Source: Orbicella franksi
Lineage: Eukaryota
Direction of reading: 5' to 3'
DNA: 64,000 nucleotides
Assembly (NCBI GenBank): GCA_964199315.1
Contig: OZ116701.1
Coordinates: forward strand, 32,178,001 to 32,242,000
Shown here in pieces: positions 3,791 through 62,334 of the stretch; within the stretch, counting starts at the first letter, position 1, and each line of letters opens with the position of its first letter. The position numbers and the translations under genes were made by a program. The notes below the pieces were generated by a model that had not been told where the DNA came from, searched no databases, and saw only the letters and a list, made by a program, of their open reading frames with translations.

Positions 3791-4018
3791 CTAATGCTGC
3801 GAAATGTTAGGTAAGTTCAAATGAATATCTCCCATCTTGCTTCTTTGAGGTGAAAAATATTAAGTTTCACAATGTAACGATGCTGTAGGGGTTCGTTACA
3901 CCAAGCCATTTCGTGCAAGAACTTAGAATCACAGTAATATTGTTTTTTTTTTTTAATCTGGAAGAACAGGCAATCTTTCCAGATTGATAGTTCGTTCTTT
4001 AGAGAGTTGTCGCTGCTT

Positions 4019-38457: not shown

Positions 38458-41400
38458 TTACAAGTGTGTAGTTTTATTTCCAAATAACGAATGATACAAT
38501 CTGTGTTTCTTTGGTTGATCATTGTAAGGATTAAAGTATTCGTACAGAAGTTGCTCAGCGGGTTTGAAGACATGTCTTTTGAAATGCACGGCGTCGTATT
38601 TGTCACTACTGTCATCGGTCCCCTCGGGATATGAAGCGCTCATCGGAAAAACGTCTAAAATTTCAAAACCAGCGTTACACATGGCCCAGATGGAGTACGC
38701 GTTGTAAAGATGTATCCGCTGTAGAGAAATAAACGGATTCTCGTAAGTAATTAACCTTAGTCATTGCATTCAGTTTCCTCGCAAGCGTGGAACTACATAG
38801 AAAATTTATCAGCACCTGACAATTATTCTAATTATGATGTTGCTCAGAATTATTGAAGGGTCGAAGCACCTGAAGCACTTGCCTCAGAATGGGAAGGTCT
38901 GGCTTTAAACCCCAGCTCACATCATGCGCCTATTTCAGTAGTAGTAACAATCTTTTATTAGGAAGCTCCATCACTAAAAGTGGTTTACATAGAGGTCCTA
39001 ATACTAGATATATACTATATTTCAGAAGTGAAATTGCGATCTACTTCTGCAAAGCTGCGCACTACATTTCAACTTCTATGTATCAGCTGTTAATTGTGCG
39101 CGATATATTCAGTCATTGGGTCAACAAGTTACAACTCAACCAGACAGCTTTGGTGTTTTCTTTCATAATTTTGATCATTTGCCTACGCGAAAGGAGTTAA
39201 GCACGTATGAACATACTAGCAAATAAAAAAGCGCGTTTCTTCATCAGTGCGAGTAGATTAACTCTCACCAGAAAGCCATTAAAAAAGCGGATGAGCATTT
39301 TGCTCAATGTTTACCCAAAATGCTTTAGATTAAGGGACGAATACGAATTAGAAACGAATATTAGTGGATGCGTAATCAAAGCCAACCGCTGATCACATTA
39401 CCTGAAGAGTCAAGAACCGCGGGCTCGGATGATTGTGATACAAAAACCTCTCTCTGTGAATAGCCGTTGTAGTTTTCCAAATCAGTTTTCCTTTAAACTT
39501 CAGTTCGACCACGCCATCTTCATTTACCCAAGTCTCTTTAAACAAGTTTATGATTTCATCGATAAGTTTTTGATAAGTGGCAAATTTCAAAGCGGACACG
39601 TAATGCAATCCACAATTCAGAATAATAACACTGTGCTCGTCCATTTCGGGGAGATAAAGAACCTCACTGAGTTCTTGTAGCACACGTGAAGGATCGAAAT
39701 CAAGATAGTTTCTCTTGTATTTTTCTATTTCCACCGACTCGAGCATGTTGTAAACCCAACTGTACGTGAGATTGCAGACTTTGAAGATTTCGCCGCAAAG
39801 AGGCGTGTAATATATAGAATCGTAAAATCGCAGCGCCAGTGAGTCGCCGTAAATCCAGAGAGTACCCTTTTTATCTCGCGGTGAATTCTTGAATAACCTC
39901 TCTGAAATCAAAGGAAAGAAATTTTTTAGAATAAACCGAGAATTAATCTTCAAAGCTTCACTTCGCTGAAGTCCTTATTAATCCTTATGTCTAAAGTACA
40001 AGCACTGTCTCTTTCTTTGTTATACAGAGTTGAGTTATGTTAAATGTGCATGGTCCCTCATGAACAAGTAGTTGCTGAAAAAAAATTAGTGTTGCATCGC
40101 CAAGTACAATTCAAACGTTGAATTGACAATTGGGAATGATTTCCAGTCCGTACTGCGCACTCTCGGGAGTTTGTTTACGTTTTTGCAATTGTTTTCATCC
40201 ATGCAAATAAGATTTTGCAACTACACTGTGAACCCCATTATGGATGCGAAACTTTATGCTTTGTTCTTTGTGATATTAATAGAGAGAACAACTTTGTAGC
40301 TGTAAAGTTCAAAGAAACTGTTACACGAAATTATTTAAATTGCCTCAAAGATAAGGAATAACATCGATTCCTATTCTATCGCGTAAGGTTCATAAACATT
40401 GCGGTGCTGAGACGGCGCAATACGGGCTTGATATCATCTTTGACTTTCTTCAGCTATCCTTACACTTGGCGAAAAGTGACATTCCGAGCACTAGCTCTTC
40501 ATCAGAGCAAACTTCAACGTTTTAAATTTGATAGAAAGGCTAATTTATCATTTCATCTGCAAGTTGAAATTCTCTCACCTGGTGCGTGAGGGACCCACGT
40601 GCCATTAGTCCAATGGCCAAAGCCATCCGATAGAAATTTACAACTTGTTCCACAATACGACGGGTGTCCAAATCCATAACTCAAAAATTCTACAAAGAAA
40701 AATTAAAAAGTTAGTTCCAAACTTTGTTGTCATATGCGGGAGCCATATCGAGTCTTCCCAAAAGAAAAGGTTTTTATTGATTTACACTCAGGCCAAAAAC
40801 ACACTAACGAGTTTTCGTGTGAAAACGCGTACTTTTTGGTGCGTTTTCGCCTATCGTCCACACTAACACGACCGACAAGGCTGATGAAAACGGAGGCTTT
40901 CGAAAATGGTTTCAAAAGTGGAGCCTTTTGAAAACGCTCCGTTTCTAGTTTGGATGCAAGTAAAGACGGAGGCTTTTGACTGAAAACAATGCCGAGAAGG
41001 CGTCATATACTGTCATTTCCATCAGCGTTTTCGGGCGTTTTAGTGTGGACGATAGGCGAAAACATATCGAAATAAAAGTATGCGTTTTCGAATGAACACG
41101 AATTAGTGTGGACAGGTGAAAACAAAACGAAAACGCTAGTGCGGTCGAAAATATTTTGCTTCATCATCGTTGAGATGAAAACGGATACTCAAGTTAAAAA
41201 CGCATTAGTGTGGTCGGGTTTCTCAGTCAGCTAGCCATAATAAGTAAGTGGTACGCGATTCAAAAGACAACAGTATTGCGTGAGACAACCCTTCTTGCGC
41301 AATCCTTGTACACAATCAGGGACACAAAAACTACTGTTCCATACCGTCTCTTCTCATTGGCCCGTGACTCGCGGGTACGTCAAAACAAAACGGGTCACCA

Positions 41401-43017
41401 CCCCACAGAGGCTGCATCAGGTACACTTGCTTTCCCGCCAAAATTCCCCGAGGCTGGTTGCTTCCATGGGTATTTCCTGAAAATACGAAAAATGTATATG
41501 TGATGTTTAATGAAATCTGCCAGATACATCGTTTGTACAGTAATAAAAGCTCGTCGAAAATTCATTGCCCCTGCATTTGCTTCGTGTTACATTCTTGCCC
41601 AAAATACCGATACTTTCGTCGCAAAATCATTCCATTTAGTCCCACCGTTGGAGGACCTAGTGCTGTTTTTAGTCTTTGTTTGTTAAGGCACTTAATAATA
41701 AAATTTCCACATTTACATCTCTACCAAATACTCACATGAGCGCTCAAGGACTCTGAACGTTGTCGCATCGTCATTGAGTGATTAGTTGCCAACTTGGAGA
41801 CGAAAACTGCTCAGGTCTCGGAGCCCGCGATTCACCATCAACGGTTAATCTGCGTTCCTGTCTAGTGACCCTCAGGTCGGCGCTTACCCCTGCTTCCCTA
41901 GTATGAACTAAGAGTATTTTTACTCCCCCGGGATGGAATGCAAGTCCATCGCAGGGTTACCACCCAACATTAAATTCGCTGGTACCCATTTCTACACCTA
42001 ACTGGAGAGGTACTGTACGAGTACAGTGTCTTGTCCAAAGAAGACAAGGCAATGACCCCGGCCAGGGCTCGAACGTACCTGGACCGCTGGGTTCGGAGAC
42101 TAGCGCGCCTTCCACACCTAGTTCTAAACAAGTATTTCTCTGGCTGGTACATGTTCTCTTAGTTTTAATACATCAACTGGCAAGGAAGTAACCTCCAGTT
42201 GATGATTTTTAATACTCATCACCAGTCTCCTCAATAGTGTATTTATATCGTGAGAGGTAATCACATTTTGATCAATCTCGCAAGTAGAAGCGTTTAGCTT
42301 AAAGCTGATTTTCTTACCCGAGATAAACCAATAGTCAGGGGGGTCCTTCAGTCCATCACAAAGCGAATGATCCAACACCACTGACACGCAGTAGTTCCCG
42401 GGAGCAAGAATCAAGAACAGAATCTCGTATATTCCATTACCAAGGTCAAATATCGTGGGTGCAAGCCCTGTAGGGCCCGAAATAAAAACTCTCCAGTAGT
42501 CCCCTCCGACCGATTTAGGAACGCCATCGGAGGTCTGGGTTTGAATTTGAAGCTTGCTGAATTGCCCAGCAGGTCGAATATCCATTGATTGAACAAAACT
42601 CATTCTCGAGTTAGTTCTGTTTTCAACATTCCATCCTGGTAAATTATCGTCGTAGACCGTGTTTCCTTCGCACGGTTCTCGAATTCGTTTCCAGTCTATT
42701 CTGGCGTTGCGCATTCGGCACCAGTCCCTTCCGAAGTCTTCCAAAGTGTTTCGGTTGACCGTGCTGGTCAAATATAACGGATAGTACCATTTCAAGTAAA
42801 TAAATAGCGATATGATGACGCCCCAGTAGAAGCAAAAGGCCCTTCGTAGGAGAAACAAGCGCGGGAGTCCCCTTAGAGTACCTACTTTACGTACTCTGGC
42901 CTGAATGCTGTGCTTGAGTGAAGGAATTAGTCTCTTTCTGCGCATGCTGTCGATTTCCTGGTGGTCAGCGGTAGATAAAGAGATGAAATCTGTATCATCT
43001 TGCTCAGTTGCACTCAT
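38458..43017 (-). CDS. NXPE family-like (neurexophilin/PC-esterase, SGNH-type) type II membrane protein, copy 1, 5 exons, 567 aa
   Basis: Exons 42318-43017, 41345-41476, 40579-40689, 39402-39901, 38458-38718; phases consistent. N-terminal TM helix, GGDYWRV...DLGNGIYE Ig-like segment, IYGDS, LNCGLH, YDAVH. Confidence 0.88.
41844..42112 (-). mobile_element. CORE-type SINE, degenerate, intron 1 of NXPE-like copy 1
   Basis: gtccatcgcagggttaccacccaacattaaattcgctggtacccatt...gccagggctcgaac is the reverse complement of the family body. Boundaries approximate. Confidence 0.75.
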
Positions 43018-44224
43018 ATGATCTAAACGCTCCCCAGCAGAAAGCTAAGAAAAGAAAAAAATATCGAGACAGGCATGTGACCTCATTCACAGAGTTCATG
43101 TCTTACATGAAAAGGACAACCTGCTGTTCAGGAACCTGTCCGATTTCGCACTTACCCCCGAACTTAGAAAACAGCAATTCGCGCATTTGATTTTCTCGCT
43201 TTTTAAATTTTATGTTCAATTAACTTTCAACAGAATGAAGAATCAGAAGTGCAAGGGCTTGTCCAATCTGAAAGTATCTTTAAGCTTGAACCTTTTCGTC
43301 CAGTGATCAGACTTTTAGCATTTAGAATATTCTTCATTGTTAATTTAGCGGCGTCTTAACTACCCCTATGGCACTGATCGCCGCCTGTCAATTTTTGCTT
43401 ACCTTATAACTTCAACGAAGAAGTTATCTGCAACGTTGTATTGTCATGCCGTATCCTGTCCGAGCCTTACGACATTTCAGGTTTTGAACTGACTTGGAGA
43501 TTGTGTTTCTAATAAATAGACTAATCAACGTTTCTGCGCCGCATAATCATAAGATGTGGTTGAAAAATTTGATTTTCTTTGTTCTCCCGCGACTGAATTT
43601 GTCACGTGATTTCTGACGACACTTTGCGTCACCTGTACTGTTGGGATCAATTGTCTGCAAGACTTGAAATAAACGAAGCTAAAAGTCGAATAACCGATTC
43701 ATTTTATGGACAATGACGATTCTCTACACCGTTAGCTTTCAATGTTAAAAAGATAACGCTTTCTTTTAGTCCAAGACTTCAACCTGCCATTCATTTAAAA
43801 TTATGTTGGTCTTTGTTTCAGTGGTAGTCTATTTAGTTTTGTTTTTACCTGAAAAGTCTTCATCACAAAAGACTTTGCTGGTGATACGGGTCTCCTCATA
43901 TTTGCTATTTTCTCCACAAAAAAATCGTAGTCCCCGTTAAACAATACAAACAGTATTTTTCAATGATTAATAAAATATCAACTGACTAACAAGCTCATTT
44001 AGATTTAAAAGAAAATTTTACTATTCTGGGGGAATATTAAATATGGGAGTTTGAATGTTGTTTTCACTGTGGGAAAAATATGGCTACGCTAAAATCGTTC
44101 TCTACACGATCTTTTTTTAAGGCAGAGCGATCACTATCCCGTCGAAACAGATGGCGATGATGTAGAAATCGTGGAAATATGACAAAGATGCTTCTAAGTC
44201 TAGTGATATTGGCTAGCTCCAAAG

Positions 44225-44560: not shown

Positions 44561-45247
44561 TAAATGTGGAGATTCATGAGTTGATATTCAATACTTGTCT
44601 AGGACAATTTCTTTCCACGTAACATGTGACCGCACTGACTGACTAACATATTGTGTTTGACACAAGAATGAAACTGAGCCGATGTTGAAATATATTTTAT
44701 TGCAATCAAAAGTTTGCAAACACTGTTTTAGTGGGATCCCAAAATGGACGAACATATGAATTAACAAAGCGGGAAAATAAGGCCACGAAAAAAGTCACTG
44801 TAATAATGATTTCAATGCTATACAACGAGTTTAAAGCAATCCTGTAAGTCGGGATGTGTTCAAAACTATAACGAGAACTGAGACTTCCTTGACTTTCTCA
44901 AGGGAACATTGAAGTTGGAGCTGTATGAAACGAGATAAAAAAAGTACAGGAAATTCTAATAAATATCCCATAAATAGACTCTCTGATGAGGCAGCACATT
45001 GATGCACATGGCACTCTATAGTTTCTATATGCAGGGAAAATAGTGTACCCCCCGCCCCATTCTCTCCCTCGTCTTCACAATCCCATGAGGCAAATTTTTT
45101 CCGGATCTCACCACATTGTAAAGATTTGTATTTATTCTTCGAGGTAATCTCTCCAGCCACCGAAGTCGTGGTATTATTCAGTATGTCTAATATGAGGAAA
45201 TTTCTTCAGGTTCATTTTCCATGCTGTCACTGTGTGTCACTTCGCGG

Positions 45248-48200
45248 TCATGACGGACTGAAGTATTCTAGTAGAATTTCCTCCGCGGGTTTGAACACCG
45301 AGTCTTTGTAATGTACCATGTCGAACGGATCCACGCTATTATCAGTGCCATTAGGAAAAGACGCACTGAGTGGGTATACATCAAGTACCTCAATACCGGC
45401 GTTACACATGGCCCAGGTAACATATGCATTGTAGAGTTGAACCCGCTGAAAGAAACAAAAAGATTCTTATAAACAAACCACTATAGTATGCACGCTTTTC
45501 TTGGTCTCAGCAGAAAACAGGGTTCCTGATTTTGTGTACAAAACGTTCCGTGACGACGTCGTGTACGGAAACTAATGGAAAACATTTTCCTCTTTTGTCA
45601 TCTTGTTGAAGAATTTTTGTCTTACGATTTTTTTTACGATTTTCTTTGTTGCAGATTTAATGCCACAGAGTTGGCAGCTATCATACGTCTCTGATTCTAG
45701 GTCTTGGTCGACCCGATTCGTGAGTAGCCTTTGTGATTGCATGGGACAAAATTTCACAAAAAGATATCAAATCATCAATACCAACGCTCAGCTTTGAGAT
45801 GGGCCTGCAGGGAATCATGGTATTTTAATATAATTTAGATAGGTCTTGAACTTGAGTTGTTCAGTACAACTACCATGGCCCTGCATGCTGTGGGTGTGTC
45901 TCATAAAGGGAACTGGGCATTGTATAACTCTTCTTTACAGTGAACAGCTTGTCTTTTTTATGCCGACAGTTTCATTCGAAATTTTACAGGCCGCATTCAA
46001 AAACGAGATCCTAGCAGATGATTTTCTTTTTTTCTCATCGCCTACGTGGTTGTCGTGGAGATACGGTGGCCTCATGGTTAGTGCGCTAGTCTCCGGATCG
46101 AGCGGTCCGGGTTCGAGCCCTGGCCAGGGACATTGTGTTGTGTTCTTGGACAAGACACTTCACTCTCACAATGCCTCTCTCCACCCAGGTGCATAAATGG
46201 GTACCGGCGAATTTAATCCTGGGGGTAACCCTTCGATGGACTAGCATCCCATTTAGGGTGGAGTAGAAATACTTTTAGTCGCTTCATGTAACTGAAACCG
46301 GAGATAAGCGCCGGCCTGATGGGCCACTTGGCTCGTATGCAGACTTTACTCTACGTGGTTGACAAGGCATTGATAACAGATGGAGAAACAACTTCATCCT
46401 CTGAACTGGCTGTCGTGATAGTAATGTTACTATACCTGACGAGTTAGAAATCGTCGCTTGTGAAGGTGCGGATACCTCAATCTTTCTCTATGGATAGCGG
46501 CATTTGTCTTCCAAATCATTTTTCCCTTGAACTTTAATTCAATTCTTCCATCGTCGTTTACTTTTGTTTCTTTAAAGAGATCCACGATACCATCGATAAC
46601 TTGGCGGTATGTTGAAAAGTTTGTTGACGTAATAAAATGCAGTCCGTGATTAAGAATAATGACGCTTTTCTCGTCATTCATCTGCGGCAAGTGAATAACC
46701 CTCGCTATCGCGTCCAAGACGCGTGTTATATTTATTGGAAGAAAGTTCCTCTGGTGCTTTTCCACAGAAGCGTTTTTGATTGGATAAACCCAGTTATAAG
46801 AAAAAGAGCAAACACGGAAAACTGCTTTACACAGTCGAGTTCGACGGATGGAACGGTAAAACCGTCCTGCATTTGAATCTCCATAGAACCATAACACGCC
46901 CTCACGATTTCTCGGAGAACGTTTCCTCCACAAGCCTGTGAGAAGAGACATAAGGTACAGAATAAGCGGTCGATAAACCAGTCGGCATAAGTCAATTGCT
47001 AAGTTAAATTCATCTTTAAGTGATTAATACGATTCCTTATTAATAAATAGTAAATTCCAAAAGAAACATACCCAGAGTCACACGTCTGGACTTACAATTT
47101 CATATAACTAACGGCTATAAAAAACTAATTACAAACTATTTACAAATGTATGAATAGCAATTAAATAAAATTGAAAAGGTATCTGTTCACAAAACAGCGT
47201 TTATGACGTTCAGTTCTGACACGTGGCAGGATGTAAGGGGGTCCCCTTTTCCTAAGGCTCCTTGATCTCCAGGGTGGAAGCAGTTCATGAAGGGGATGAG
47301 TACTACCAGTAGTTATCGTATCCCATTGTAGCCTATCTTTGATTCTAATTACATCAGTAATGTGTTTATATTTGCTGGTATAACCATAACGCAGAGCCCG
47401 CTTGCAAAACCTATCAATTTGGGAGAGACATTTACTATAGATGATATAGATTTAAAATGCTGCAAAATTAAACTTAAGTTTGCTGCTTTTCAGTTGTTTC
47501 CAATAGCTAAATAACAAATAGAAACATACCCCTAAACCTGAAAAGGGATTTAGAGGTTTTGATTAAGAAAATTCAGATTAAATCGTTAGTCTATCTTTTT
47601 CTCTCTCGGATTCTCTGCTGTCTTTGGGTCTCTGGGTCTCAGAGCCTATTTAGTATATTTTGCGCCTTATATATACCTTTCACATGTGGTCTCCAGGTCC
47701 CGTTGGACCAGCGGCCGAAGCCATCCCATAACAACTTGCAATCCTCGCCGCAAGAGGGAGGGTTACCCAGTCCATAACTAAGAAATTCTGAAAGTGTAAA
47801 GATAACGTTATCCCACTGTTGCTGATTTTAAAACTGCTGGGAAATTAACAGTTAGATGAGCAATATCTAAAATCGGCTGCCAGAGCATTACCATCGTATT
47901 TTGTGGGCCCAGCTGGTGACGGAACTGTTATGGTCAGCGGTATTCCTTCCCAAAGAGGGGTGCGTATAAAGACATAACGCTCCACCAAGCTTCCTTCTGG
48001 TTGACTGCTGCCATGGATATTTCCTGTCGGGCAGACAGAGAAACGAGAAACAATGACAGGAAGGTGCGTTCAGTAATCTATTTTACGATAACTGTTGAAA
48101 TTCCCACGCGCTCATTGGCCAATTTTCATTGTCAATGAGCGGACAAACACATGAATTTATAATTTATGCGAAGCATCAACGAGCGAGAGCTGACAATTTG

Positions 48201-49417
48201 ACAATTTGTTATCGTAAAAAACAAATTGAGTCAGTTTTTCATGTGTCTGTCCTATTATTGATAATGAATTTCGTCATAGCATTGTCAAAGTAGTCTGTGG
48301 ATCCACTTGACTATCGCCTCGTGGATCCACAGCTACTTTGACAATGTTATGACGAAATTCATGATCAATAACAGGACAGACGCATGAAAAACTGACGTCA
48401 ATTTGCTAACTAGATTTGACAAGAAAATCATAAAAGGGGAGGTTTAGATGCATCTGAATATTTTCACAGCCGTTTCGCCGAATTTTCCTAAACTCTAAGG
48501 ACTGTTTTCTTAACAAGAAAGAAAATGAAGCATTTTTTCACTTTATGAGCCGCACTACACTTTGGTGAGATACGCATTAAAGTATTTTTCACATCCAGTA
48601 CGTCAACGTCGATCGCTTGCAAGGAGTCAAAATGGGAAGATTGTCGCGTTTATTGCGTAAAACTTCATAGAAAATAAGCGCACTAAATTTCTCCCCGCTG
48701 TTACCGTAACTTACCGAGCATAAACCAGTAGTCAGGAGGGTTTTTCATTCCGTCACACAACGAGTAATCCAAAATGATCGACGCAAAGTAGGTCCCAGGC
48801 TCCAGGATGAGAAACACCACCTCGTACGTTCCATTGCCGTGATCAATCACTGTTGGTGCAAGCACAGATGGTCCCCATATAAGAACCCTCCAATCGTCGC
48901 CCCCTATAGTCTTGGGTTGACCGTTATAGGACTGGGACTGAATGCTGAATCTGCTAAACTCCCCGGCAGGTTTAATGTCCATAAAAGGAATAATGCTTTT
49001 AGTGGGGTCGGTCCTGTTTTGGATTCCCCAACCGGGTAAATCCACGCCAAATTTGGTGTTCCCTTCACAAGTTGCTCCCATTAGTTCCCAGTCCGTTGCA
49101 ACCCTGCGTACTCGGCACCAATCTTTTCTAAATTCTAACAGACCGTTGAAAGTTGTCGTTTTTGTGGCATGCACAGGAAAATACCACTTAAGGTACACAA
49201 ACAGAGTAATGGTTAACGCCCAGAGGAGGAAAAACGTTCTGCGCGGAACAAATATTCTGTGCACTACCCTGCGTCTTGTCACAAGTAATTGAGCGGAGGC
49301 CCGCAATTGACGGAACTTGCGCCACAGTCCTGGTGAACAGCGGAGAACATCTTGTAATGTTTTTCGTCCATTGGTTCCTTTTGGGTATATATTGGCATCT
49401 CTGCCAGATTCAGTCAT
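45248..49417 (-). CDS. NXPE family-like protein, copy 2, 5 exons, 547 aa
   Basis: Exons 48715-49417, 47892-48023, 47677-47787, 46436-46935, 45248-45445. Motifs GGDDWRV...DHGNGTYE, FYGDS, LNHGLH, FDMVH. Confidence 0.88.
46053..46350 (+). mobile_element. tRNA-derived CORE-type SINE, full length, 11-bp TSD
   Basis: A box TGGCCTCATGG and B box GGTTCGAGCC; MIR-core-like tgtgttcttggacaagacacttcactctcacaatgcctc...aaatggg; direct repeat ctacgtggttg at 46042-46052 and 46351-46361. Confidence 0.85.
48078..48413. mobile_element. Non-autonomous element, same family as 28957-29294
   Basis: Direct similarity to 28957-29294. Confidence 0.85.
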
Positions 49418-49511
49418 AGAATGTACTTTCTATAAAATAGAGGCTTCTGAGGCTGGAGCGCGTAAAGAGATTGTCCTCCAGGCTTCATGGAATTGTCTAC
49501 CTAAGAAACAA

Positions 49512-49830
49512 GTGACGACTGCTCAATAGCCAGCTTTCATTTGAATGATCACACAGTAGGTTTTCATCTACAGACTCAAAAGATAGAACCACCTTGTACA
49601 GCATATAATCAACAGTACCTCATGAAATTACTGCTCAATAGCTTTCACTGATTTACCGTGATGATCACACCCTAAGGTTTCATTCACAGACTAAAAAGTT
49701 AAACCCACCCTGTACAGCAAAATAAACAGTACAGCATAAAAGTCCTTTTCAATATCTTTCACTTGAATGGTTACACACTAGGATTTCATTAATTAAAGGT
49801 TAGAACCACCTTATATACTCATTAATACCA
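49512..49830. repeat. ~110-bp degenerate tandem repeat (~3 units)
   Basis: Recurring caatagctttca..tgaatg.tcacac..tagg.tttcat...cagact.aaaag.tagaaccacc.tgtacagca. Confidence 0.75.
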
Positions 49831-50963
49831 TGTCGTAAGAAAATATAGCCAATCAGAGTGTGGAAAGCCGTTGTCTACTCGACGGTATTATACCACTGGC
49901 TGTATTTTCTATGGCATGATATAAAATAGTTATCTAACGTTTTGCCTTACTAGTATCCCTTACAGGCCAGCATCACATGAATCGGTTTTTTTAAAACAAT
50001 AAATTAAATATACCAGAAGTTTTCAATTGAGAAAACTTATCCGACGATTCAGTGTTGATATCGATACATGAACACTGTGAAGCAATTGAGAACCAAAGAC
50101 ATTACTTATAACACCTTCTGTTATAGTAACAATTTTGAAACTGATAGTCTTTCAACTGAGAAGAGTTTATACAAGCTTAAATCCGTGTATTCATACATGA
50201 ATTCGACCATTCAAAATAAGACTATTCGATTCGTTACTGCCCTCATTGATCATCTCTTGATATGGTTTCAAACTGGGATTGCCATTTACGTTTGCTACCG
50301 TGAAAGGAAAAGCACAGATGGATCGAATCCAACCATGTATAGAAGTTTTATTTCATCTGTCGGGGCGTATCCAAAGAATATAAGCGTCTGACCGAGGGTA
50401 TTCAAGGAGAATTTCATTACCGAACAATAAAACAAATGGCTGACTACATTTCATTCAGTCAAGCCTGTCTTGTTGCACTTGCAGGTGACAGATTCAAGAT
50501 ATTTACCTGAGAAATATATCCCGTGCTGACCGATGTTGAATCCTTTACAGTACCAGTGTTCCGGGCAGTAATTGCTCCATATCGATATCGCATTTCCTCT
50601 TCAACTTCTAATATTAGTCTCGTTGTTTTATTTACACACTCTCCACCCTCGTGGCATGTGACTTCATGTCACCAGTCAATGTTCGGTGCTACATTCACAG
50701 CAAAAGAATGGCTGAAAGCAAATATTTTCCTTTGCAATGACAGCTTCTCCACTTCCCACCTTGAAAGAAATAATTAAATCACTTTCCTACACTTGCATGT
50801 CGTTAATTTCGCGAAGGCGCACATTGGCGGGTTTCGACTATGATTCAGTGATTCCCCTAAAAGCGTATAAAAGTTGTCAACCTGAGCAGATTTCTGGAAA
50901 TTAATGTTTGCAATAACAGCGCCTTGCTTTCCCGGAATGCAGCTGAGTACCTAAGGGGCTGAG

Positions 50964-51085
50964 GTCCCGGCTTTCGGATTGAGCGGTCCGGGTTCGAGCC
51001 CTGGCCGGGGACATTGTGCTGTGTCCTTAGGCGAGACACGTTACTCTCACAGTGCCTCTTTCCACCCAAGGGTATAAATAGGAGT
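50964..51085 (+). mobile_element. Partial CORE-type SINE
   Basis: gagcggtccgggttcgagccctggccggggacattgtgctgtgtccttaggcgagacac matches the 46053 element; 3' truncated. Confidence 0.75.
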
Positions 51086-51903
51086 CCTGCCATGGCCAAG
51101 CGCTCCATTCGGGGAGGGGCAGGGGTTAAAGATCGTCAAAAATATCGGCAAACCTTATCATTGTCCTTTGTTTGCGCGCAGATTACTAAAGCTTTCTTCC
51201 TCAGCGCACGTGCAGTCGTAAACCTTACAGAGCCACCTTAAAAAAAATTATTTTCAATTGTATTTTTGTCTTGATACGACGAACAATTGAGTAAACTTCT
51301 GACAGCGAAAATAGCCTCAAACTGTCTTTCATTCAGTAAGGTTAGCTAAACAGGCCAACGGTAGATTGCAGTAATTTTAGTTAACAGAGTTTAAAATCTA
51401 AATATCTGGGAAATTTACAATTATACTTATGGATAACTATATTTCACAACCATGAATGTTCTATCTATACTCAGCTGTTTTTAGTGTGAAGCGGGATTGT
51501 ATAATAGCTTTTATTTGGTAATAAACTGAGAGCAAAGTAAGGTTGAAAACCGGCGCGATTTTTTTGTAGTTGCACTCCAATTTGTTCAAGAAATTCGAAT
51601 CCTTTTTACTGTGATAGGGATCCAGCGCGCCGACATTAGCATAGGCCACCATGCCTTCAACAGTTGTTTAACAGTGCAACTTATTTAGTACATTAACCTC
51701 TTGCCTTCTTCACTCTCCCCTGTAAAGCCATTCCATTTTGTAATAACCGTTTTACAAAAAAAAAACAAAAGCAAAAGAATCGGAGACAAATGTTTTCAAG
51801 CCTGACCGTATTGTAGGATTTGCGTTAATCCAAAAAGAAAGTCCACGAGTTTATGGTATTATTCCGTATGTCTTATACGAAATAATTTCTTTAAGTTTAT
51901 TTT

Positions 51904-54900
51904 CTACGTCAGTCTGCTTGTGTAATTGACTTCGTTCCACCAGGGACTAAAGTACTCTAGCAAGATGTCCTCCGCGGGTTTGAAGACCAAGTCTTTGTAA
52001 TGCACGCTATCGAACGGATCCACGCTATTATCAGTCCCGTTAGGGAAAGACGCGGTGAGTGGGTACACATCAAGTACTTCAATACCGGCTTTACACATGG
52101 CCCAGGTAGCATATGCATTGTAGAGTTGAACCCGCTGAAAGAAAGGAAAAGAGTTTTATAAACTAACCATTACAGTAAGGTAAATTCTGTATGCGAGCCA
52201 CGTAGCCCATCAGGCCTGAACTTATCACGGTTTCTATAGCATGAAGCAACTAGGAATATTTCTACTCCTCCCTGGATGGGATACCAGTCCGTCGCAGGGT
52301 TACTCCCTGGCTTTAATTTCGCCAGCACTCATTTATACACCTGGGCGGAGAGAGGCACTTTGAGAGTAAAGTGTCTTGCCCAGGAACACAACACAATGTC
52401 CCCGGTCGGGATTCCAACCCAGACCACTTGATCCGGAGACGAGCGATCTAACCACGAGCCCAACGCGCCACCGAACAAATTAACAACAGTAGATACGCTT
52501 TAATTGGTCAAAATTTTGATTGGTCAAAATTTGGGAATTTTTACAACAGGGTCTAGAAAGTATTTGTTTAGGACTGGTTTTGAACTTTCCAGTGAAAATG
52601 ATCAGGCTTTAGTTATTTACTGTTAACATTACTCAACAGAATCCCTTTATCTATCAGAGGTCTATATGATGAAATGACAACATAAAAACCAACATTACAG
52701 AGGCGGCTGCTACTACAGGCCTAGGTTCGTCTGTGATCCTTCTTTATCTTCTCTCAATAAATGTTATAATTTTTGCCGGGGAGGGGGACGCCGTTACAAA
52801 AATGACGGGGCTGCTCATCTTACCTTTTAAAGGTTAGAAAAACAGTTTTGGTACCTCTTAGAATGTTCAGCCAGGAGATATTTGAAAATCAACAGACTTT
52901 TAATTTGTGTCAGAATTGGTACCTCTTAGGGGTGAAAAGTATTTCAAGCCACGCCCACAAAACAGGATCTTGGTACCTCCTAGGGGTTCTTTTCAAAATG
53001 TCCGACCAGCAACCCCGTCCCTTTCATATGGGAGACCCCTTCGGGGAGTTTTTGTACCTGTCGAGTAAGAAATCGTCGCTTGTGGTTGTGTGGCGATCTT
53101 AGTCTTTCTCTGTGGATAGCAGCGTTTGTCTTCCAAATCATTTTCCCTTTGAACTTCAATCCAATTCCTCCTTTTTCGTTCACTTTTGTCGCTTTAAACA
53201 GATCCACAATACCATCGATAACTTGGCGGTATGTCGAAAAGTTTGTTGACGTAATAAAATGCAGTCCGTGGTTAAGAATAATGACGCTTTTCTCGTCATT
53301 CATCTGCGGCAAGTGAATAACCCTCGCTATCGCGTCCAAGACGCGTGTTATGTTTATTGGTAGAAAGTTTCTTTGGTACATCTCTACTGTAGCGTTTTTG
53401 ATTGGATAAATCCAGTTGTAAGACAGGGTGCAGCCGCGAAAAACTGTTTTGCACAGTGGAGTTCGACGAATGGAACGGTAAAATCGTCCCGCATTAGAAT
53501 CTCCGTAGATCCACAACACACCCTCGCGATTTCTTGGGGAATGTTTCATCCACAAACCTGTAAAATGATTCATTAATGAATGAGAGAAAATTAACAGAAC
53601 GGGAAAATTATTGTCAGCCAATTAGGGCAATAGACCATTTTACAGTTGTCTGCTCAGTGACCTGGCCTTTGTATGGCAGCGAGGCTAGAGTTGACCTTGT
53701 TTTGATACAGACCTCACTGCTTTTGTTGTGTAAAACAAGTAGTTCTGATGCTAACTAGGTGCATTTACATGACAAAAGCAGTGAGGTTTGTATCAAAACA
53801 AGGTCAACTCTAGCCTCGCTGCCATACAAAGGCCAGTTCACTGAGCAGACAACTGTAAAATGGTCTATTGGGGCAACTCTCCCTATGAAACACGCCCTCA
53901 GGAAATCATGGGAGTTGTACTCATCAAAACAAATATCCAGTCCAAGCCCCGATGAATACAACTACCATGATTCCCTGCAGGCGCATCTCACAGAGAAAAT
54001 TGGCCATTAGAACGATTTGGACATAGGAGGTATCTCCAAAGCATGCAACGAACGCCTAGAAAGCCAAAAGGCTTAACATGGATCTTAGGAAGTAACAACT
54101 AAAAGCAACATTGAGATCAAGACATTTTGTAGTGTTAAAAGGACAAATATTGCGAGGAATCAAGTTTAAAATCGCCAACATTGTCTGCCTTCTCAGATCT
54201 TCTTCTCTCGTATTTACCTTTCACATGTGGTCTCCAGGTCCCGTTGTACCAGCCGCCAAAGCCATCCCATAAAAACTTGCAATCCTCGTCGCATGAGGGA
54301 GGGTTACCAAGTCCATAGCTCAGAAATTCTGAAAGTGAAAAGATTATGTTTTAAGCTCGTTTTACAAGCACCCAACAAATCTGACCATTGATGTAGTGTA
54401 ATAATAACCTGGTCTGAATTTGTTGCCGCTTTTTTTAGGCTTGCTTGGCCTCAAGGATTTATGGCTTAGTTGTTTGCGTATAAACAAGGTTTTCTGAAAG
54501 ATAGTTTCCAAGATGCAAGCTTTTCCGACACTTTTCCCCGCTGCAGCTCGGCTTAAAATTTAGTCGATCTAACTAATTAATTCGTTACGATGAGTGTACA
54601 GTCAGACCTCTCCACAGCGGCAACCCGGGGGGCAGAGGAAAGTGGCTGTTGTAAAGAGGTGGTCGTTAGTGGAGGTTCGACTGCATTACCCTCATATCTC
54701 GTTGGCCCAGAAGGTTGTGGTACAGATATGGTCAGCGGTATTCCTTCCCAAAGAGCAGCTTGTAAAAAGACATAAGGCTCCATCAAAGTTCCGTGCGGTT
54801 GACTGTTGCCATGGATATTTCCTGATGTAAAATTAGTGAAACAAACTATGAGGTGGACTGTATATTTCTCAGATCTTTAATGTAAACCAGGAGAAAATAT

Positions 54901-56066
54901 TCAAAGATATTTTGTGAATTACAAAAATGCTATTGTTTCCAGAGCCGTTTTCCTTCTGTTTCCAGTTGCATACGCAGAACCTTGTTTAATTCATAAAAGT
55001 CATTAGAAAAAGCCCAAAGAAAAAACTTGCGCTGATTGATTAAAAATCGTGTGTTTTGAAACACAGAACTAGCACGAGCGGTTGACGTACATTTTGATTA
55101 TCAATTGTCAAAGTAAACATTTTTTTTTGGTCGCGGTATTTTCTAAAAGAAATAAAAAAACATGTTCTCCGTGTTGCTATCGAGTCATAGAGACCCTCGT
55201 GAAAGTTTGGGAGAACTCGAAAAAGCTGTTCAAACACGCTGCTATCGGCTCGTGCTCCCACAGCCTTGCTCTTTCTCCCAAACTTCCACTCGTGTTTCTA
55301 CAGCTCGATACTGGAGAAATAAACGCTATAAATTTTGTAAATACCGCACCATACCTATCATAAACCAGTAATCAGGAGGGTTTTTCATTCCGTCACACAG
55401 CGAGTAATCCAACACGATCGACGCAGAGTAGGTTCCAGGCTCCAGGATAAGAAACAGCACCTCGTACGTTCCATTGCCGTGATCAATCACTGTCGGTGCA
55501 AGCACGGATGGTCCCCATATAAGAACCCTCCAATCGTCGCCTCCTATAGTCTTGGGTTGACCGTTATGTGTCTGGGACTGAATACTGAATCTGCTAAACT
55601 CCCCGGCAGGTTTTATGTCCATTACTGTAATGAAACTTTTCGTAGGGTCAGTCCTGTTTTCCATTCCCCATCCAGGCAAATTCACGCCAAATTTGGCGCT
55701 TCCTTCACAAGTTGATCTGAGTTGTTCCCAGTCTGTCGCGACCCTGCGCACTCGGCACCAGTCTTTTCTGAAATCTAACAAACTGTTGCGATTTACTGTG
55801 CTCGTAAGATACAGAGGAAAATACCACTTGAGGTACACGAATAGTGTAATAGTCAATGCCCAGAATAGGAAAAAAGCTCTGCGTAGAACAAATATCCTGG
55901 GCACGCCCCGCAAGGTTCTTCCTCCTGTCACAAGAATTTGAACCGAAGTACAGAATTGACGGAACTTGCGCCGCAGTCCTGCTGGACAGCGAAGAACCTC
56001 ATGAGATGTTGTTTGCCGGTAAATTTCTTCCGAATACACTGTGACATCTCTGTGATACTCAGTCAT
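51904..56066 (-). CDS. NXPE family-like protein, copy 3, 5 exons, 561 aa
   Basis: Exons 55355-56066, 54690-54821, 54218-54328, 53058-53557, 51904-52134. Motifs IYGDS, LNHGLH, FDSVH. Closest to copy 2. Confidence 0.88.
52179..52472 (-). mobile_element. CORE-type SINE, same family as 46053-46350
   Basis: Reverse-complement similarity to the 46053 element along its length (e.g. gtgtcttgcccaggaacacaacacaatgtccccgg). Boundaries approximate. Confidence 0.8.
53631..53867. mobile_element. Palindromic MITE with TAG...CTA termini and ~9-bp TSD (intron 3 of NXPE-like copy 3)
   Basis: ~110-bp TIRs (tagaccattttacagttgtctgctcagtga...); flanks ttagggcaa / ttggggcaa (one mismatch). Confidence 0.85.
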
Positions 56067-57823
56067 AGAAGGCGCTTTCTAGGAAAAGAAACCTCTCAGA
56101 GCATGTATAGCGATGATGTACCAAGCTTCATCGATTTTTCTACCTAGGAAACAAGGAAGAGGTTGAATGGTTAAAAGACGAGTAATTTCAATTAGATCTA
56201 GACTTCTGTGGTAAGATAGAACTTGTTTCTTCAAAAACATCTTGGACGTCCTAATCGATTGGCGTCGTTTAAGCCCGTTGAAATTGTGTGCTGAAATATC
56301 CGAAAGCCACATCCTATAGGTGTCATGCTTCCCTAGTGTTTTCCTAGTCCAAGATGGCGCTCGCTCGCTCCACTACAGATCCAAAATGGCGTTTATCCCT
56401 CAGGCCCCAGCTTCAAAATACGCCCGTATTGCAAGCTTCACGATATAGAATAGCATTGTATATACAACAGAGAGTACCTCAGGAAAGTATTATACAGCAT
56501 GGTTTCGGTTTAAGTGGGTTATTCAAGAGGGTTTTACTACAAAGAGAACCTAAAGCGTGTTTGATGTTTTTTGTGTGTGTCGTGTTTTTATATCAGTCTT
56601 ATCGCGTTGTTAATTTCTTCTTTTTTACATAAATTACAAGAGCCTATTCAATTGTAAATATACCAGTCAAAGTTATTAACTAAAACTTATCGTACAATTA
56701 ATTGATACCATTGGGACGAAAAGGTTTCAAAAAGCAAACTGAAATTCAATCATACACGTAAGCTCTATTGAATTTATTCAGAATTATACAAAGCATGGTC
56801 TTACTAACTAGGGCTAATAAATTTTGTTGACTGTCTTCAATTCAGTCAAGCCTGTCTTCTTGCACGCATCATAAGTCAAATATTTTCCTGCGAAAAAAAT
56901 TACATTCCCGTACAAACCTTTGTTGCTAGACCACCTTTAAAGCGGTTTTCTGGGTAGAAATTGCTTCATTTTGAGTTGAAAACACCAGGATAACCGTTCA
57001 TCTTCGCCTAAACATCTTCTCCATCCATGTAGCCTCGTTGTTTTATTTAACTTCGCTCCACCCTCGTGGCATGTGGCTTCAAATCACCAGTCAATGTTAG
57101 GTGCTTCATTCACAGCAGACGAATAGCACGAAATGTTTGTGTTTGCCTCCGCTGGAAAGAAATAATTCCTCGGCCTTTAGACTTTCAGAACATAACCTTG
57201 CACGATAATTTTGGTTGCGGTCGTACAGACAATCAGCTAAAACAAGAGACCGTGATCTCTTGGCTAAAATTAATCCTCTTGAACGCTGTAAAACTGAACA
57301 GATTTTGGGAAATCCTAGTCAGAGGGGCCACCATCACCTTTTGCCCAAAACGTGCTTTTTCAGAGAGCAAAATACAAAATACATACTTACGCCCGCTGAT
57401 AAAAGGAAGAGCAGTTTGGTTTTGCTTGGTTCAGTTCGCATTTTTCCGACCTATGGGCTGATGGTCTCCCATTGAAATTTTATGTCTTGATGAACTAACA
57501 TGGAAGCCCTCGAACTTCATTGTCAGGCTTCTTCAAGCCACCGGGTAATTTTCCTTTTATTATATAGCTAACTAATTGTTTGCACAAACAGCCATAAAAA
57601 AGCGGGAAATGACGTCATCAGTATCCTCACTAGCTAGTGAGGATGTGAAAAATACGCCACTCGGATCCCGGATGTAATTTCGCTCGAATTTTACTAGTGC
57701 TTTATTTTCCAGTAAACACTGGTTTCTATCAATTTTTATCAGTAAAATGTTCAGCTCGTTTTAAAATTCGGGCATACGGTTCACTGCGATCGTGGTTGAA
57801 AACTGATATGTATGTGGTTCCTG

Positions 57824-58042
57824 GGGTGCTCTCCATTATGCCAGACCGACCGGTACAACCCAGCGGGAGTACCCGAGGAAAAATGGGACGACATCTCCGA
57901 TCAAACCGCGCTTATTCCTCTCCCGAATTCCCTATAGCAGTGAAATCTACTGACGAGAAGCAGGCAATAAACCAGTTTGTCAAAATGGAATGCCAAATTT
58001 CGGTCCGACCGACTGGAACTTTTGGCATAATGGAAAGCACCC
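57824..58042. mobile_element. MITE with 20-bp TIRs (PIF/Harbinger-like) just 3' of NXPE-like copy 4
   Basis: gggtgctctccattatgcca vs tggcataatggaaagcaccc (19/20 complementary); flanks ctg / cta. Superfamily assignment is inference. Confidence 0.75.
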
Positions 58043-58116
58043 CTAGTTTCAGGATTACTGTTTATGACATAGAAGCAATTTATATCAACATAATCACGAA
58101 ATTAAGAAAAAAAACT

Positions 58117-61100
58117 TTAATCCATCTTATAAGTTTTGTAAAAATAATCTTCTAAAAGTCTCTCTGCCGACTCGAAGACAAAATGTTCGTAATGGACCGC
58201 ATCTTTAGGTCTGGATGGTTTGCCAGTGCCGTACGGATAAGAATCGGTCAGCGGATGAACATCTAGTACAGGAACATTGGCCTGGCACATGGCGGCGGTG
58301 GCAAAGGAGTTAAAGAGAAGAACTCGCTGCTAGGAAATGAAAAAAAAAACAAATAATGAATGATGTATTTAGTATGGAAACTTGGAAACTGAAAAACAGC
58401 ATCGTAATAGTTGATTAAGTTGGGATGTTAGTATGGATAATCAAATAGTGACGAATGAAATTAGGAAATAATTTTCACGCGCGTTTTGTCAAAATTCTAA
58501 TAGTTTTCCGATTCTTTAACGCAAGTGAAATTATTTCTTAATTTACGAGTATGCTCTTTAAATATCTTTAATATTATGGGTGGCAAATTACGCTTACAAT
58601 CGTTGGTTCCCAACCCTTATAACTAAGAACGTGATGGTGTCAACGTCAACGCTGAAATTTCGTGGAAAAATTAAGGATTAATTTGTCATTCATGGTATTA
58701 TAAAGGTTATTGGTCCAAAGAATTTACTTTATAATTTTTTCCTTAATTGGCACTTGTGCGGCTAAGGTACTCTCTTTTGATTGTTAAAAGTAAAAATTAC
58801 CCCCATTTCTCCGTTGACAGCTACATTTCGTTTCCATCAGACTCTTGATTAAAGTCCATTGAAATTTTTCATGGAAGGCATATGCTGAAAATTACCAGAG
58901 TATGAACCGCTATTCTTTTTGCGTAATCCGCCAGGCGTGACACAAAAGAACGCACGAGAGGAAATAGCCTCGCGCGGTCAGTTTTCCTCTTGCGCGCTCT
59001 TTCGCGTGTCTCAGGACGAGCCAAGCAAAAGAGGGGTTACTACTGATCTAAACGTTTCCTTTGCCGCGTCATTTCACACGGGTCAACGGGTTTGAATTTC
59101 ACGCCTGTTAAAATATGATAGAGCAAATGTCTAAGGACAGCCAGCGTCTGCGACGTTCAGACAAGACGCTTCATACCTGGTAAGTTAAAAACCTTCTTGC
59201 TTGGATGTGTCTCCCGTCCAGCTTTTGTTTATTCAAGGCCGTTGTTGATCTCCAGATCATTTCACCAGGAAAAAGCAAATTTCCATTGGCTCTAGTCACC
59301 ATCTTTGTTTCTTCAAAGAGTCTTATTAATGAACCAACTGTCTCTTGATAATTTGAGAAGTTTGTACTCTCAAGGTAATGTAAACCGGCATTTAACAGAA
59401 TCACACTGTTCTTGTCGAAAAATGGTTTGGATATGACGTCTAACACCTCACTAGCGACTCTCATGAAGTTGAAGTCGAGATTGTCATCAGCATTCTTGGC
59501 AGCCGTTATATTCCCTGCAACGAAAAGAAGGAAACACAAGAGCGCTGTAGTAATTAAATTACTGAACAAAAAAATGCTTTCTCATTATTGGGAACATTGA
59601 TGGCTCAAATGTGAGAGCGCTCCCTACAGTCCCACCAATGTGACCCGGGTTCCATTCCGGCCCGGTACCATATGCAGGTTGAGTTTGTTGTTTGTTCTCG
59701 CCTTGCTCCGAAGGTTTGTCTCCAGGTTCTCCGGTTTTCTTCTCTCCACAAAAACCAACATCTCCAAATTCCAATTCGACCAGGATACAGGACCCGCATG
59801 AAAACCATGCTAAGGCTGATGTGACTTCCTCTCTAAATATTGTCAATTTATTTTAAGTCCATAGTCACCTTTTAACTGGTAGATCCAGTTGTATGTGTGT
59901 CCACACCATTTAAAAACATGAGTGCATAGCGGTCGTGGCCTGACTCCCCAGAAAAACTGCTCGCTGACCGAGTCTCCGTATATCCACAGCACGCTGTCCT
60001 TCCGCAGGGGACTGGGATCCAGAAAACTGTGCCTGTCTCTGTCTGTAAGATACATGATGCTTGTGAATTAACGATTAGTTAAAGTTTTAGTTTTAGGGTT
60101 TGATTGAGATCTCGATCGCATCTCACGCTAAACATGACATCTTTTACAATACTGTTTATATCAAGGTATGTGTTTTCTGCTCGATCTGATAGCGAGGCCG
60201 AAAAAGGGAAAATTATTACAGTAATCAGCTTTATATAGTCGGTCAATTGGCTGTTTACAGGTACCTGGTACAACCACGGAACAGCACGTGAGAACAATGC
60301 CTTGACATAAATTACATTATGTCTGGTCATAATGCCTGCTTTTAAAGACTCCTGTACATTAAATTGAATCACGTAGAATGATAAAGGAAATTCATCTGCC
60401 ATGTTTGTTATTTTAATACATCATTTGTACTTTGGCAAGTGTCTGAGTGACAATCTCGCGGATTTTAGCATTAATTTCACGAAGAACTGTTCAAGGTGGA
60501 TTTGTAGAAATTAAGAGAAGATGAAGAGTAACAGAGTGAATCCTCCTATAGGCCTCATTGCCCTCTCAAGTTATTTTCAGATATGGTACCCAGTGCTTCC
60601 GCGAATAATGTTGCTCCGTGTGTTCAGTTTAAAGCTGCTTGCGCTGTCCACGTGAGAAAAATCTTCGTCACAGGATTAGCTATTTCTTGAACCTCCTGGG
60701 ATTTCTGAAGTCCGAAGTGATCTAAAAATAACTTGAGACTGATTACCTTGGTACTAAGGCTTGTATGGGGGGTTAACTTTATTACTCTTTGTCCTCTCTT
60801 GCAAAAATGCATTGACATATTAGACTCTGCCACAATCCTGCCCTTACCATCTGCACTTATGAAAGGTTTCCACGTCAGTGAGCCTTGCACACCGCTGACC
60901 CAATTACCAAAGCCATCCCAGAGAAATTTGCATTGAATTCCACAAGTTAAGTCGAGACCGGCGCCCACAGACTGCACAACTGAAAAAATTGGAGATACAT
61001 AGATGTACATCTTACTTTTTCACACTATATTGTAAGAATCAAAAAACATCATATTCCACATTTGTCTACTCTTGTTTTTTAGTTGTATGTTTTTGCCTCA

Positions 61101-62334
61101 CCTTGATAAAGAGGCTTTTTCCCAAAAGGCACTGGGCGAATGCTGATCCATATTGGGTTACCAGACCTCAAAGGTTTTAAAATGTACGGCCGCTCAGCGC
61201 CACGCTTTGTTGGCCCTAGGACTCCCTCTTGTTGGTTCTTTCCTTGTGCGTTTCCTTTAACGAATCAGATCGCAATGTTACGAGGGTTTTATAAAACCTC
61301 CAGTTCGTTTCGGGAAGCTTAAATTTGAATTGTTCTTGTTTTCCTCTAAGGGTGTGACAGGGGGAGGGGGCAGCTGCGATTCAACTATTATTGTAATATT
61401 TGTTTTCCAGATAAAGCAGTTTTCACTTGAGTGCCGGAAAGTATTTGGTTCTGCGCTATGACGCTACACGATTTTCTCAAAATCTCGCGCCACTTCTTGA
61501 TCCAATCAGAAGTAAAACAGAAACCAATTATGACTCACTTGTACACGTTTTCCCGCGCTTTATGTCAGTTACATGTATTTGCTCTGAGTTTTGATTGGTT
61601 CATTGGATTGTCTGTGTCCTTTGTGACTGGCTAGAGTGATTACTTTCGTTTCGGTTTTACGATACTCAATTGAAAACCGCTTTATTTGACGGCTTGGTTC
61701 CCCAAATAAGTATGTGTTTGATAACAGTGGCCAAGGTAATTAGGACGAGTATGCTGTTGTAAATGATAAACTTACCGACTATAAACCAGTCTGGAGGCGG
61801 ATCTCTGAGCCCATCGCAAAGCGAATGATCCAGAATTGCTTCCACTTGGTAATTCCCAGGTTCAGTGATAAGGAACACGACTTCATAGGTCCCATTCATG
61901 TGATCGAAAACAGTCCCAGCAACTGACGCCGGGCCCTTTAGCTGCACTCGCCACGAATCTCCTCCGATTCTTTTTTCTCGTCCGTTGCTTGCTACAGTCC
62001 GAATACTCAGCCTGCTGAATTCACCACACGGTCGAATATCCCACAAAGAAATAAAGCTTTCATTCGGGTCTGTGCGTTGCTCTGCTTCCCAGCCCGGGAG
62101 ACTGACACCCCAGACTAGGTTACCTTTGCATGGTTTTAACATTTGTTCCCAATCCACTCGGGCCAGTCTTATTCGACACCACTGTCTCATAAAGTCAGCA
62201 GTTCTTATTTGATCCGACGAAGGCGATTGGATAATTCTAACTAGCACAATGGTCACCAAGGTGACCCCCAATATTAGCACTGTTTTCTTTCTTCTTGTCA
62301 GTTTATGACTGGGAGCCAGCTCCCTTCTCGCCAT
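58117..62334 (-). CDS. NXPE family-like protein, copy 4 (most divergent), 6 exons, ~521 aa
   Basis: Exons 61776-62334, 61102-61254, 60848-60979, 59869-60042, 59177-59514, 58117-58326. First ATG at 62334 (MARRE). TM helix VLILGVTLVTIVLVRII; motifs GGDSWRV...DHMNGTYE, IYGDS, LNAGLH, KDAVH. Confidence 0.88.
59590..59852 (+). mobile_element. tRNA-derived SINE with V-domain-like core, inside the extra intron of NXPE-like copy 4
   Basis: tgagagcgctc...ccaccaatgtgacccgggttccattcc...gttgagtttgttg...ctccaggttctccggttttct; homologous to 17728-17977. Confidence 0.75.

Follow-up and report, generated by a model that had tools for sequence, protein, structure and literature searches.

A tandem array of four NXPE-like genes, putative glycan O-acetyltransferases, in the coral Orbicella franksi

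A window of 64,000 nucleotides (nt) from the coral Orbicella franksi (contig OZ116701.1, positions 32,178,001 to 32,242,000) carries on its minus strand, at 38458-62334, a tandem array of four paralogous genes, g1 to g4. All four are complete open reading frames (ORFs) with 0 internal stops, and their products are built like the vertebrate NXPE proteins. Based on the sequence and structural comparisons described below, the products are probably single-pass type II proteins of the secretory pathway that O-acetylate the glycans of secreted or surface glycoconjugates. An initial annotation, made from the letters of the window alone, had described an array of four intact genes; the array is confirmed, and its limits are exact, with 38458 at the stop codon of g1 and 62334 at the ATG of g4.

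The minus strand was translated, its stop-to-stop segments were compared all against all with BLAST to find the paralogous ones, and coding sequences were built from the paralogue alignment and frame-compatible GT..AG junctions. g1 (38458-43017) encodes 567 amino acids (aa) in five coding exons (43017-42318, 41476-41345, 40689-40579, 39901-39402, and 38718-38458); g2 (45248-49417) encodes 547 aa, also in five (49417-48715, 48023-47892, 47787-47677, 46935-46436, and 45445-45248), as does g3 (51904-56066), with 561 aa (56066-55355, 54821-54690, 54328-54218, 53557-53058, and 52134-51904). The exon phases of these three genes are identical, and their exons measure 700/703/712, 132, 111, and 500 nt, followed by the terminal exon. 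g4 (58117-62334), which encodes 522 aa, has six coding exons (62334-61776, 61254-61102, 60979-60848, 60042-59869, 59514-59177, and 58329-58117) because the 500-nt exon, single in g1-g3, is split by an extra intron at 59515-59868 that contains an interspersed repeat. The g2 and g3 proteins are 81% identical to each other and 51-54% identical to g1, while g4 shares 42-43% with the other three. A direct-repeat period of ~6.4-6.7 kb runs across the array (~6.6 kb for g2/g3), indicating tandem duplication. Two ORF-like stretches, at 45846-46196 on the plus strand within a g2 intron and at 50857-51108 on the minus strand in the g2-g3 spacer, resemble low-complexity, repeat-derived coding remnants and not genes.

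Each protein contains one N-proximal hydrophobic helix, encoded at 42778-42855 in g1, 49172-49246 in g2, 55812-55886 in g3, and 62227-62283 in g4. In g2-g4, the net charge is +3 to +6 in the 15 residues before the helix and 0 to +1 after it; in g1, two arginines stand at the start of the hydrophobic segment. Downstream of the helix, every protein has 4-8 N-glycosylation sequons and conserved cysteines, and an AlphaFold2 model of the g1 orthologue places the N-terminal helix at residues 53-78. Judged from sequence, such an arrangement points to a type II signal anchor that would leave most of the protein on the lumenal or extracellular side, in keeping with the transmembrane anchor assigned to all four genes in the initial annotation. 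Within the secretory pathway, the proteins may reside in the Golgi; over-expressed NXPE1 has been seen at the cell surface (bioRxiv 10.64898/2026.05.20.726592).

The assignment to the NXPE family is carried mainly by structure. The model of the g1 orthologue (predicted local distance difference test 85.6, predicted template-modelling score 0.82) was compared with known and predicted structures using Foldseek. The top 11 matches in the Swiss-Prot AFDB were all NXPE1-4, from six vertebrate species (E 4.6e-19 to 5.8e-17), and the alignment was essentially full length (31-543 versus 1-545), both sides being predictions. The next family was that of the TRIM filamin domains, at 3.4e-7; the filamin domains of TRIM3 and Lin-41 align at a root-mean-square deviation (rmsd) of 1.6-2.3. 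When folded alone, the catalytic domain matched PCED1B, NXPE1, PCED1A, NXPE2/4/3, and CASD1. Among PDB entries, it matched BT3161 (4H08; Z 16.1, rmsd 2.8 over 179 residues) and, with the longest alignment, the plant xylan O-acetyltransferase XOAT1 (Z 14.8, 219 residues). The catalytic domain is therefore modelled as SGNH-like, with a GDS serine and a DxxH Asp-His pair forming a triad on this fold.

The segment between the anchor and the catalytic domain is a filamin-type immunoglobulin (Ig) domain according to Pfam, the family profile, and Foldseek. Pfam PF00630 (Filamin/ABP280) scores 26-32 bits on this part of g2-g4, around its cut-off of 26.9. A profile of 49 cnidarian homologues (Anthozoa, Hydrozoa, and Scyphozoa) matches the filamin repeats of the Dictyostelium gelation factor at 9.5e-34 and residues 92-183 of the human NXPE1 chain 9pja_B, the Ig domain only, at E 2.5e-6. 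Profile-profile comparison with HHalign against mollusc NXPE gave 95.8% probability and E 7.7e-9 for the Ig domain, with a common GGDxxRV...D.xNGTY signature (GGDYWRV at 42487-42507 in g1). It is important to note that the mollusc profile holds five gastropod sequences and is shallow, because a search seeded with a mollusc protein returned only these. The Ig-like NXPE segment ascribed to each gene in the initial annotation thus corresponds to a filamin-type domain that is profile-homologous to mollusc NXPE.

Several results weigh against membership in the NXPE family. Pfam was run, with E allowed up to 10, on exons, on complete cnidarian homologues, and on C-terminal halves, and it matched nothing in the C-terminal ~330 residues. 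In the proteins at this threshold and in the genome, neither Neurexophilin (PF06312) nor NXPE4_C (PF24536) was matched, and the same holds for PC-Esterase (PF13839), a model built mainly on plant TBL proteins; mollusc NXPEs match NXPE4_C at 1e-29 to 1e-40. A C-terminal family profile searched against the PDB did not recover NXPE1 at E<=10, its best match being the SGNH hydrolase 4H08, at a marginal E of 0.074. The C-terminal HHalign comparison with mollusc NXPE was non-significant (E 0.008, probability 4.9%), even if it is collinear, pairing YGDS with LGDS and LNxGLH with LNHFxH. The coral proteins share only 13-15% sequence identity with NXPE. Large-database word-indexed searches, run with a Nematostella homologue as query and again with the family profile, yielded only cnidarian proteins and one mollusc NXPE at E 0.54, giving no sequence bridge to bilaterian NXPE. 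The blank genome searches with Neurexophilin, PC-Esterase, and NXPE4_C are themselves weak evidence, because bacterial and archaeal control genomes were blank too.

In a language-model comparison, the C-terminal part lies closest to NXPE4_C clusters (scores of 0.90-0.92). Because Foldseek, the domain folds, the language-model neighbours, and the Ig HHalign result agree even where Pfam fails, we place the coral genes in the NXPE/PC-esterase lineage, as a cnidarian branch that diverged deeply, has the architecture and presumably the chemistry of NXPE, and lies beyond current family models. The search with hidden Markov models for Neurexophilin/NXPE and PC-esterase that the initial annotation had proposed was consequently only partly fruitful: no curated profile of these families matched, Pfam Filamin being the single curated match, and it is the Ig HHalign alignment that connects the proteins to NXPE. 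Its family call is supported by structural and profile-profile evidence instead of curated models. The cnidarian homologues themselves are all annotated as "uncharacterized" or misnamed "gelation factor."

All four proteins retain the residues expected of an active enzyme of this class, and the motif sets agree with those first listed. The nucleophile block reads GDSL in g1 (GDS at 39840-39848), GDSN in g2 (46874-46882) and g3 (53496-53504), and GDSV in g4 (59969-59977). It is followed by NxGLH, in the forms NCGLH (39603-39617), NHGLH (46637-46651), NHGLH (53259-53273), and NAGLH (59378-59392), and by DxxH, as DAVH (38584-38595), DMVH (45311-45322), DSVH (52000-52011), and DAVH (58192-58203). 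Across the 49 homologues, G333, D334, G412, H414, D523, and H526 are invariant, so that the Asp and His of the putative triad never vary, and conservation of S335 and N410 is 90% or more. The equivalents of S335, D523, and H526 in NXPE1 are S355, D526, and H529. The numbering is nearly equal; the serine block aligns transitively, through mollusc NXPE, and the DxxH equivalence is positional only. In the alignment of mollusc NXPE with NXPE1 (E 1.4e-38), GDS, ITFGQH, and DTIH lie at the expected places. In NXPE1, S355A abolishes the acetylation of CMP-Neu5Ac from acetyl-CoA and D526A lowers it (PMC12216134). The PC-esterase clan is described as having lost the canonical block-II Gly and GxND and as conserving a W/H at block III (PMC2824669). 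The coral family has an invariant histidine in NxGLH (H414), yet it also conserves N410, and either residue may serve the oxyanion hole.

A simple model would suggest the following sequence of events. The lumenal or extracellular part would follow the vertebrate NXPE plan: first the filamin-type Ig domain, then a linker bearing small beta lobes, and at the C-terminus an alpha/beta domain of the SGNH/PC-esterase type, with the Ser (GDS) and Asp-His (DxxH) triad and, at block III, the NxGLH motif. If the reaction runs as in NXPE1, CASD1, and plant XOAT1, a donor would first pass an acetyl group to the serine, giving an acyl-enzyme; a sugar hydroxyl activated by the histidine would then accept that group. 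A Ser-His acyl-enzyme mechanism has been proposed for NXPE1 in a cryo-EM preprint, likewise by analogy with XOAT1 (bioRxiv 10.64898/2026.05.20.726592). The acetyl group could be supplied through CASD1-type multi-pass acyltransferases, for which three Cas1_AcylT loci in the genome are candidates (G000:C3:19259547-19261420; C6:22573599-22578991; C15:19812686-19819021).

The same residues and fold would also serve a hydrolase. Instead of adding acetyl groups, the four proteins might strip them, as lumenal or surface carbohydrate O-acetyl-esterases, from coral, prey, microbe, or symbiont glycans, and the fold does not settle the direction of the reaction, because the SGNH fold is common to hydrolases and transferases; this tells against a confident assignment of transfer. 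Most PDB neighbours of the catalytic domain are esterases (BT3161-type hydrolases, sialate O-acetylesterases, and acetyl-xylan/rhamnogalacturonan acetylesterases), the full Ser-Asp-His triad and block-III Asn are kept as in canonical SGNH hydrolases, and the clan-defining family was first predicted to consist of esterases (PMC2824669). However, structural relatives that align over the full length come solely from the NXPE family, transferase activity has been reported for NXPE1 (PMC12216134; bioRxiv 10.64898/2026.05.20.726592), and XOAT1 and CASD1, the other characterised eukaryotic clan members matched, are transferases as well. On balance, an esterase role is unlikely, and O-acetyl transfer is the preferred reading.

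If the proteins are transferases, the acceptor would probably be a sugar other than sialic acid, because the genome shows no sialic-acid synthesis genes. Neither CTP_transf_3 (CMP-sialate synthetase) nor NeuB had a match in the 497-Mb assembly, in an exon-by-exon search that can miss short exons. Sialic acids have never been conclusively detected in cnidarians, and they are minimal in anemone mucus (PMC11829568). Together, the missing synthesis genes and these measurements make a non-sialic acceptor plausible as the more likely reading. The scarcity of sialic acid in cnidarians, which the initial annotation had taken as its starting point, accordingly finds support for this genome; it is tempered by one genuine GT29 sialyltransferase-like gene. 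The first exon of that gene (G000:C12:21965648-21966313, minus strand; L001 2149-2814) encodes a type II anchor and a clear sialyl-motif L (Pfam E 3.2e-20). Either this gene is an orphan transferase acting on another CMP-sugar, or the pathway search is incomplete.

The GT29 gene keeps a nonulosonic-acid acceptor in play, which counts against the preferred, non-sialic acceptor. In that case, the coral enzymes would acetylate sialic or other nonulosonic acids, either endogenous, made by a pathway that the six-frame search missed at short exons, or derived from prey or fish mucus. The nearest characterised relative does act on sialic acid (PMC12216134). Set against this are the lack of any CTP_transf_3 or NeuB match, the chemical measurements cited above, and a family of at least 24 paralogues, which would be many for a scarce or absent sugar. 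We therefore hold a sialic-type acceptor to be improbable, more so than the esterase role, and retain O-acetylation of other glycans as the working interpretation.

Transcript data speak to whether the genes are functional. For g4, polyA RNA-seq contigs (runs X2 and X4) confirm all five introns as modelled, bar the last acceptor. A 1320-nt contig joins 62371-61775, 61253-61102, 60979-60848, 60042-59868, and 59513-59250, the step from 59177 to 58329 is covered by further contigs, and every skipped piece has CT..AC ends, that is, GT..AG on the minus strand. The joint across the extra intron, 59513/59868 (cut +1), is thus present in polyA RNA. At the last exon, a NAGNAG tandem acceptor lies at 58326-58329; the RNA contigs use 58329, not 58326, which adds one Gln relative to the paralogues. 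In addition, P0019 is 99.2% identical to g4 over aa 282-522. The raw-read run X23 had almost no g4 reads, repeat matches alone being found, and so yielded neither strand nor level for this gene.

RNA-contig depth over the intronic g4 stretches 59608-59975 and 61448-61815 reaches thousands to 18,000, compared to ~100 on exons, and lies at 2000-8000 over 59608-59791, within the extra intron. Both stretches represent interspersed repeats that are transcribed in abundance, and one of the two lies in the intron peculiar to g4. A transposon-disrupted pseudogene was considered as an explanation of the split exon and rejected, given the precise splicing in polyA RNA and the equal split in other paralogues. 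Nor is the extra intron a recent disruption, as the exon is split at the same profile position in several other loci of the family.

For g1, the 567-aa protein of a close relative (P0167) is 94.7% identical end to end, with 30 scattered substitutions and no insertion or deletion at any junction; it counts as cDNA-level support for the gene model because its 1994-nt contig is too short to contain the introns. For g2 and g3, the ratio of nonsynonymous to synonymous substitution rates (dN/dS) stands at 0.20 overall, falling to 0.14-0.15 in the lumenal domains, and the RNA runs that contain g4 hold 0.22-0.25 of the sampled words of 45200-55150, where the exon share is 0.26. The apparent intactness of these two genes rests on their ORFs, the dN/dS of 0.20, and this near equality of RNA word share and exon share, and the dN/dS values show purifying selection. 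That the proteins are catalytically silent adhesion or lectin-like surface molecules binding through their Ig and esterase-like domains, or that some are decaying duplicates, is highly improbable: filamin-type Ig domains are common in adhesion proteins and the NXPE1 reaction centre has no obvious adjoining substrate pocket (bioRxiv NXPE1 cryo-EM preprint), but the catalytic residues are invariant in the 49 homologues from three cnidarian classes, all four copies are intact with dN/dS of ~0.15-0.2, and g4 is expressed and correctly spliced.

The array is part of an old family. The closest homologues of the window genes are scleractinian and actiniarian proteins. In a maximum-likelihood tree, Nematostella LOC5511879 and Actinia LOC116296381 cluster with g4 (support 100), and the sister group of g1-g3 comprises Nematostella LOC5511878, Actinia LOC116296382, and an Actinostola protein (support 99). 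In the anemones, the counterparts share contigs and are numbered as consecutive loci. Because the orthologues of both genes adjoin in this way, the neighbour pair represented by g1-g3 and g4 was most probably in place before anemones and stony corals diverged. Orthologues of g1 and of g2/g3 are present in Montipora and Acropora, and the duplication that separated these lineages took place in the stony-coral lineage prior to the divergence from Acroporidae; the g2/g3 duplication is younger. The phylogeny suggested in the initial annotation therefore yields an old pair shared with sea anemones and two stony-coral duplications, so that the local "expansion" is modest.

Taken genome-wide, the family is large. 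An exon-4 profile searched against the genome found at least 24 family loci, most of them on the window's own contig (C4), where the window cluster lies at ~32.2 Mb and further clusters at ~10.89-11.21, 20.09-20.10, 27.82-27.83, 33.10-33.11, and 33.35-33.37 Mb. Several of these other loci have the exon split at the g4 position. Beyond the genome, only 338 matches were found among 1.84 billion representative proteins, and the named relatives are all cnidarian, from Anthozoa, Hydrozoa, and Scyphozoa.

Outside the array, a near-perfect foldback occupies 33001-35355. Its arms of ~920 nt (33001-33917 and 34438-35355) are 98% complementary and give identical ORF translations, and the 520-nt centre holds a 123-nt hairpin; it is probably a foldback-type transposon.

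To our knowledge, nothing has been reported on NXPE-type enzymes outside vertebrates, and a literature search found no paper naming NXPE together with Cnidaria or Nematostella. In humans, NXPE1 O-acetylates sialic acid in the colon, an activity reported recently (PMC12216134). What the present analysis adds is the verified four-gene array, an NXPE-like cnidarian branch invisible to Pfam, its conserved microsynteny and family size, and the coexistence of such a family with an apparently sialic-acid-free metabolism. It does not reveal a new kind of system, since the clan, its Ig fusions, and its expansions were already described in 2010 (PMC2824669).

More generally, a tentative proposal would be that cnidarians carry a large, ancient, profile-invisible sister group of NXPE that O-acetylates non-sialic mucus or surface glycans by way of a Cas1-type acetyl supply. 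If this were true, the ancestral NXPE function would be general glycan O-acetylation and sialic-acid specificity a later bilaterian specialisation, and the diversity of the paralogues might amount to an acetylation "code", carried by coral mucus and read by microbes or symbionts. The role in microbiome or symbiont recognition raised in the initial annotation would follow from such a code. A conserved, expressed, and selectively maintained coral family in a genome with no detectable sialic-acid synthesis offers a testable entry to mucus glycan O-acetylation and to the ancestral NXPE substrate; as such, the array is a reasonable experimental lead and not a surprise.

Among known systems, the vertebrate NXPE1-4 proteins (formerly FAM55; NXPE1 is PDB 9PJA) are the most similar to the coral proteins. 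They share a length class of ~520-570 aa and the order of N-terminal transmembrane anchor, Ig-like GGDxxRV...NGTY domain, and esterase-type domain, and the modelled full-length structural match is far above that of any other family. In contrast, the coral proteins retain only the 13-15% identity noted above and fall outside Pfam Neurexophilin and NXPE4_C. Their Ig domain scores far better as a classical filamin repeat (9.5e-34 for gelation factor versus 2.5e-6 for NXPE1), their NxGLH block keeps the Asn where NXPE1 has ITFGQH, and they occur in a genome with no detected sialic-acid synthesis genes.

The wider PC-esterase clan (the N-terminal domain of Cas1p/CASD1, TBL/XOAT1, and PCED1A/B) shares with the coral proteins the GDS nucleophile, DxxH, and an SGNH-like core of five strand-helix units. 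XOAT1, at Z 14.8 over 219 residues, and CASD1 and PCED1A/B are among the top domain matches. The coral proteins differ in being unmatched by PF13839 and, compared to CASD1, in having no multi-pass acyltransferase domain. The ending DCxHWCLPG, which we take to be typical of plant TBL proteins, is absent from them. Filamin-like Ig fusions and lineage-specific expansions are further points of likeness (PMC2824669), and the invariant H414 may correspond to the His that the clan conserves at or near block III; the 2010 description of the clan by Anantharaman and Aravind counted FAM55/NXPE, Cas1p, TBL, and FAM113 among its members, and its alignment included Nematostella sequences (PMC2824669). The bacterial SGNH enzymes (BT3161, 4H08; PatB, 7TJB; and the sialate O-acetylesterases 6XPG/7PZG) are soluble, single-domain proteins that, unlike the coral proteins, have no Ig domain, anchor, or eukaryotic linker lobes. 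Nevertheless, 4H08 provides the best match to the core among solved structures, and its FNNGLH-type block aligns with NxGLH, the block-III Asn being kept in the coral proteins as in BT3161.

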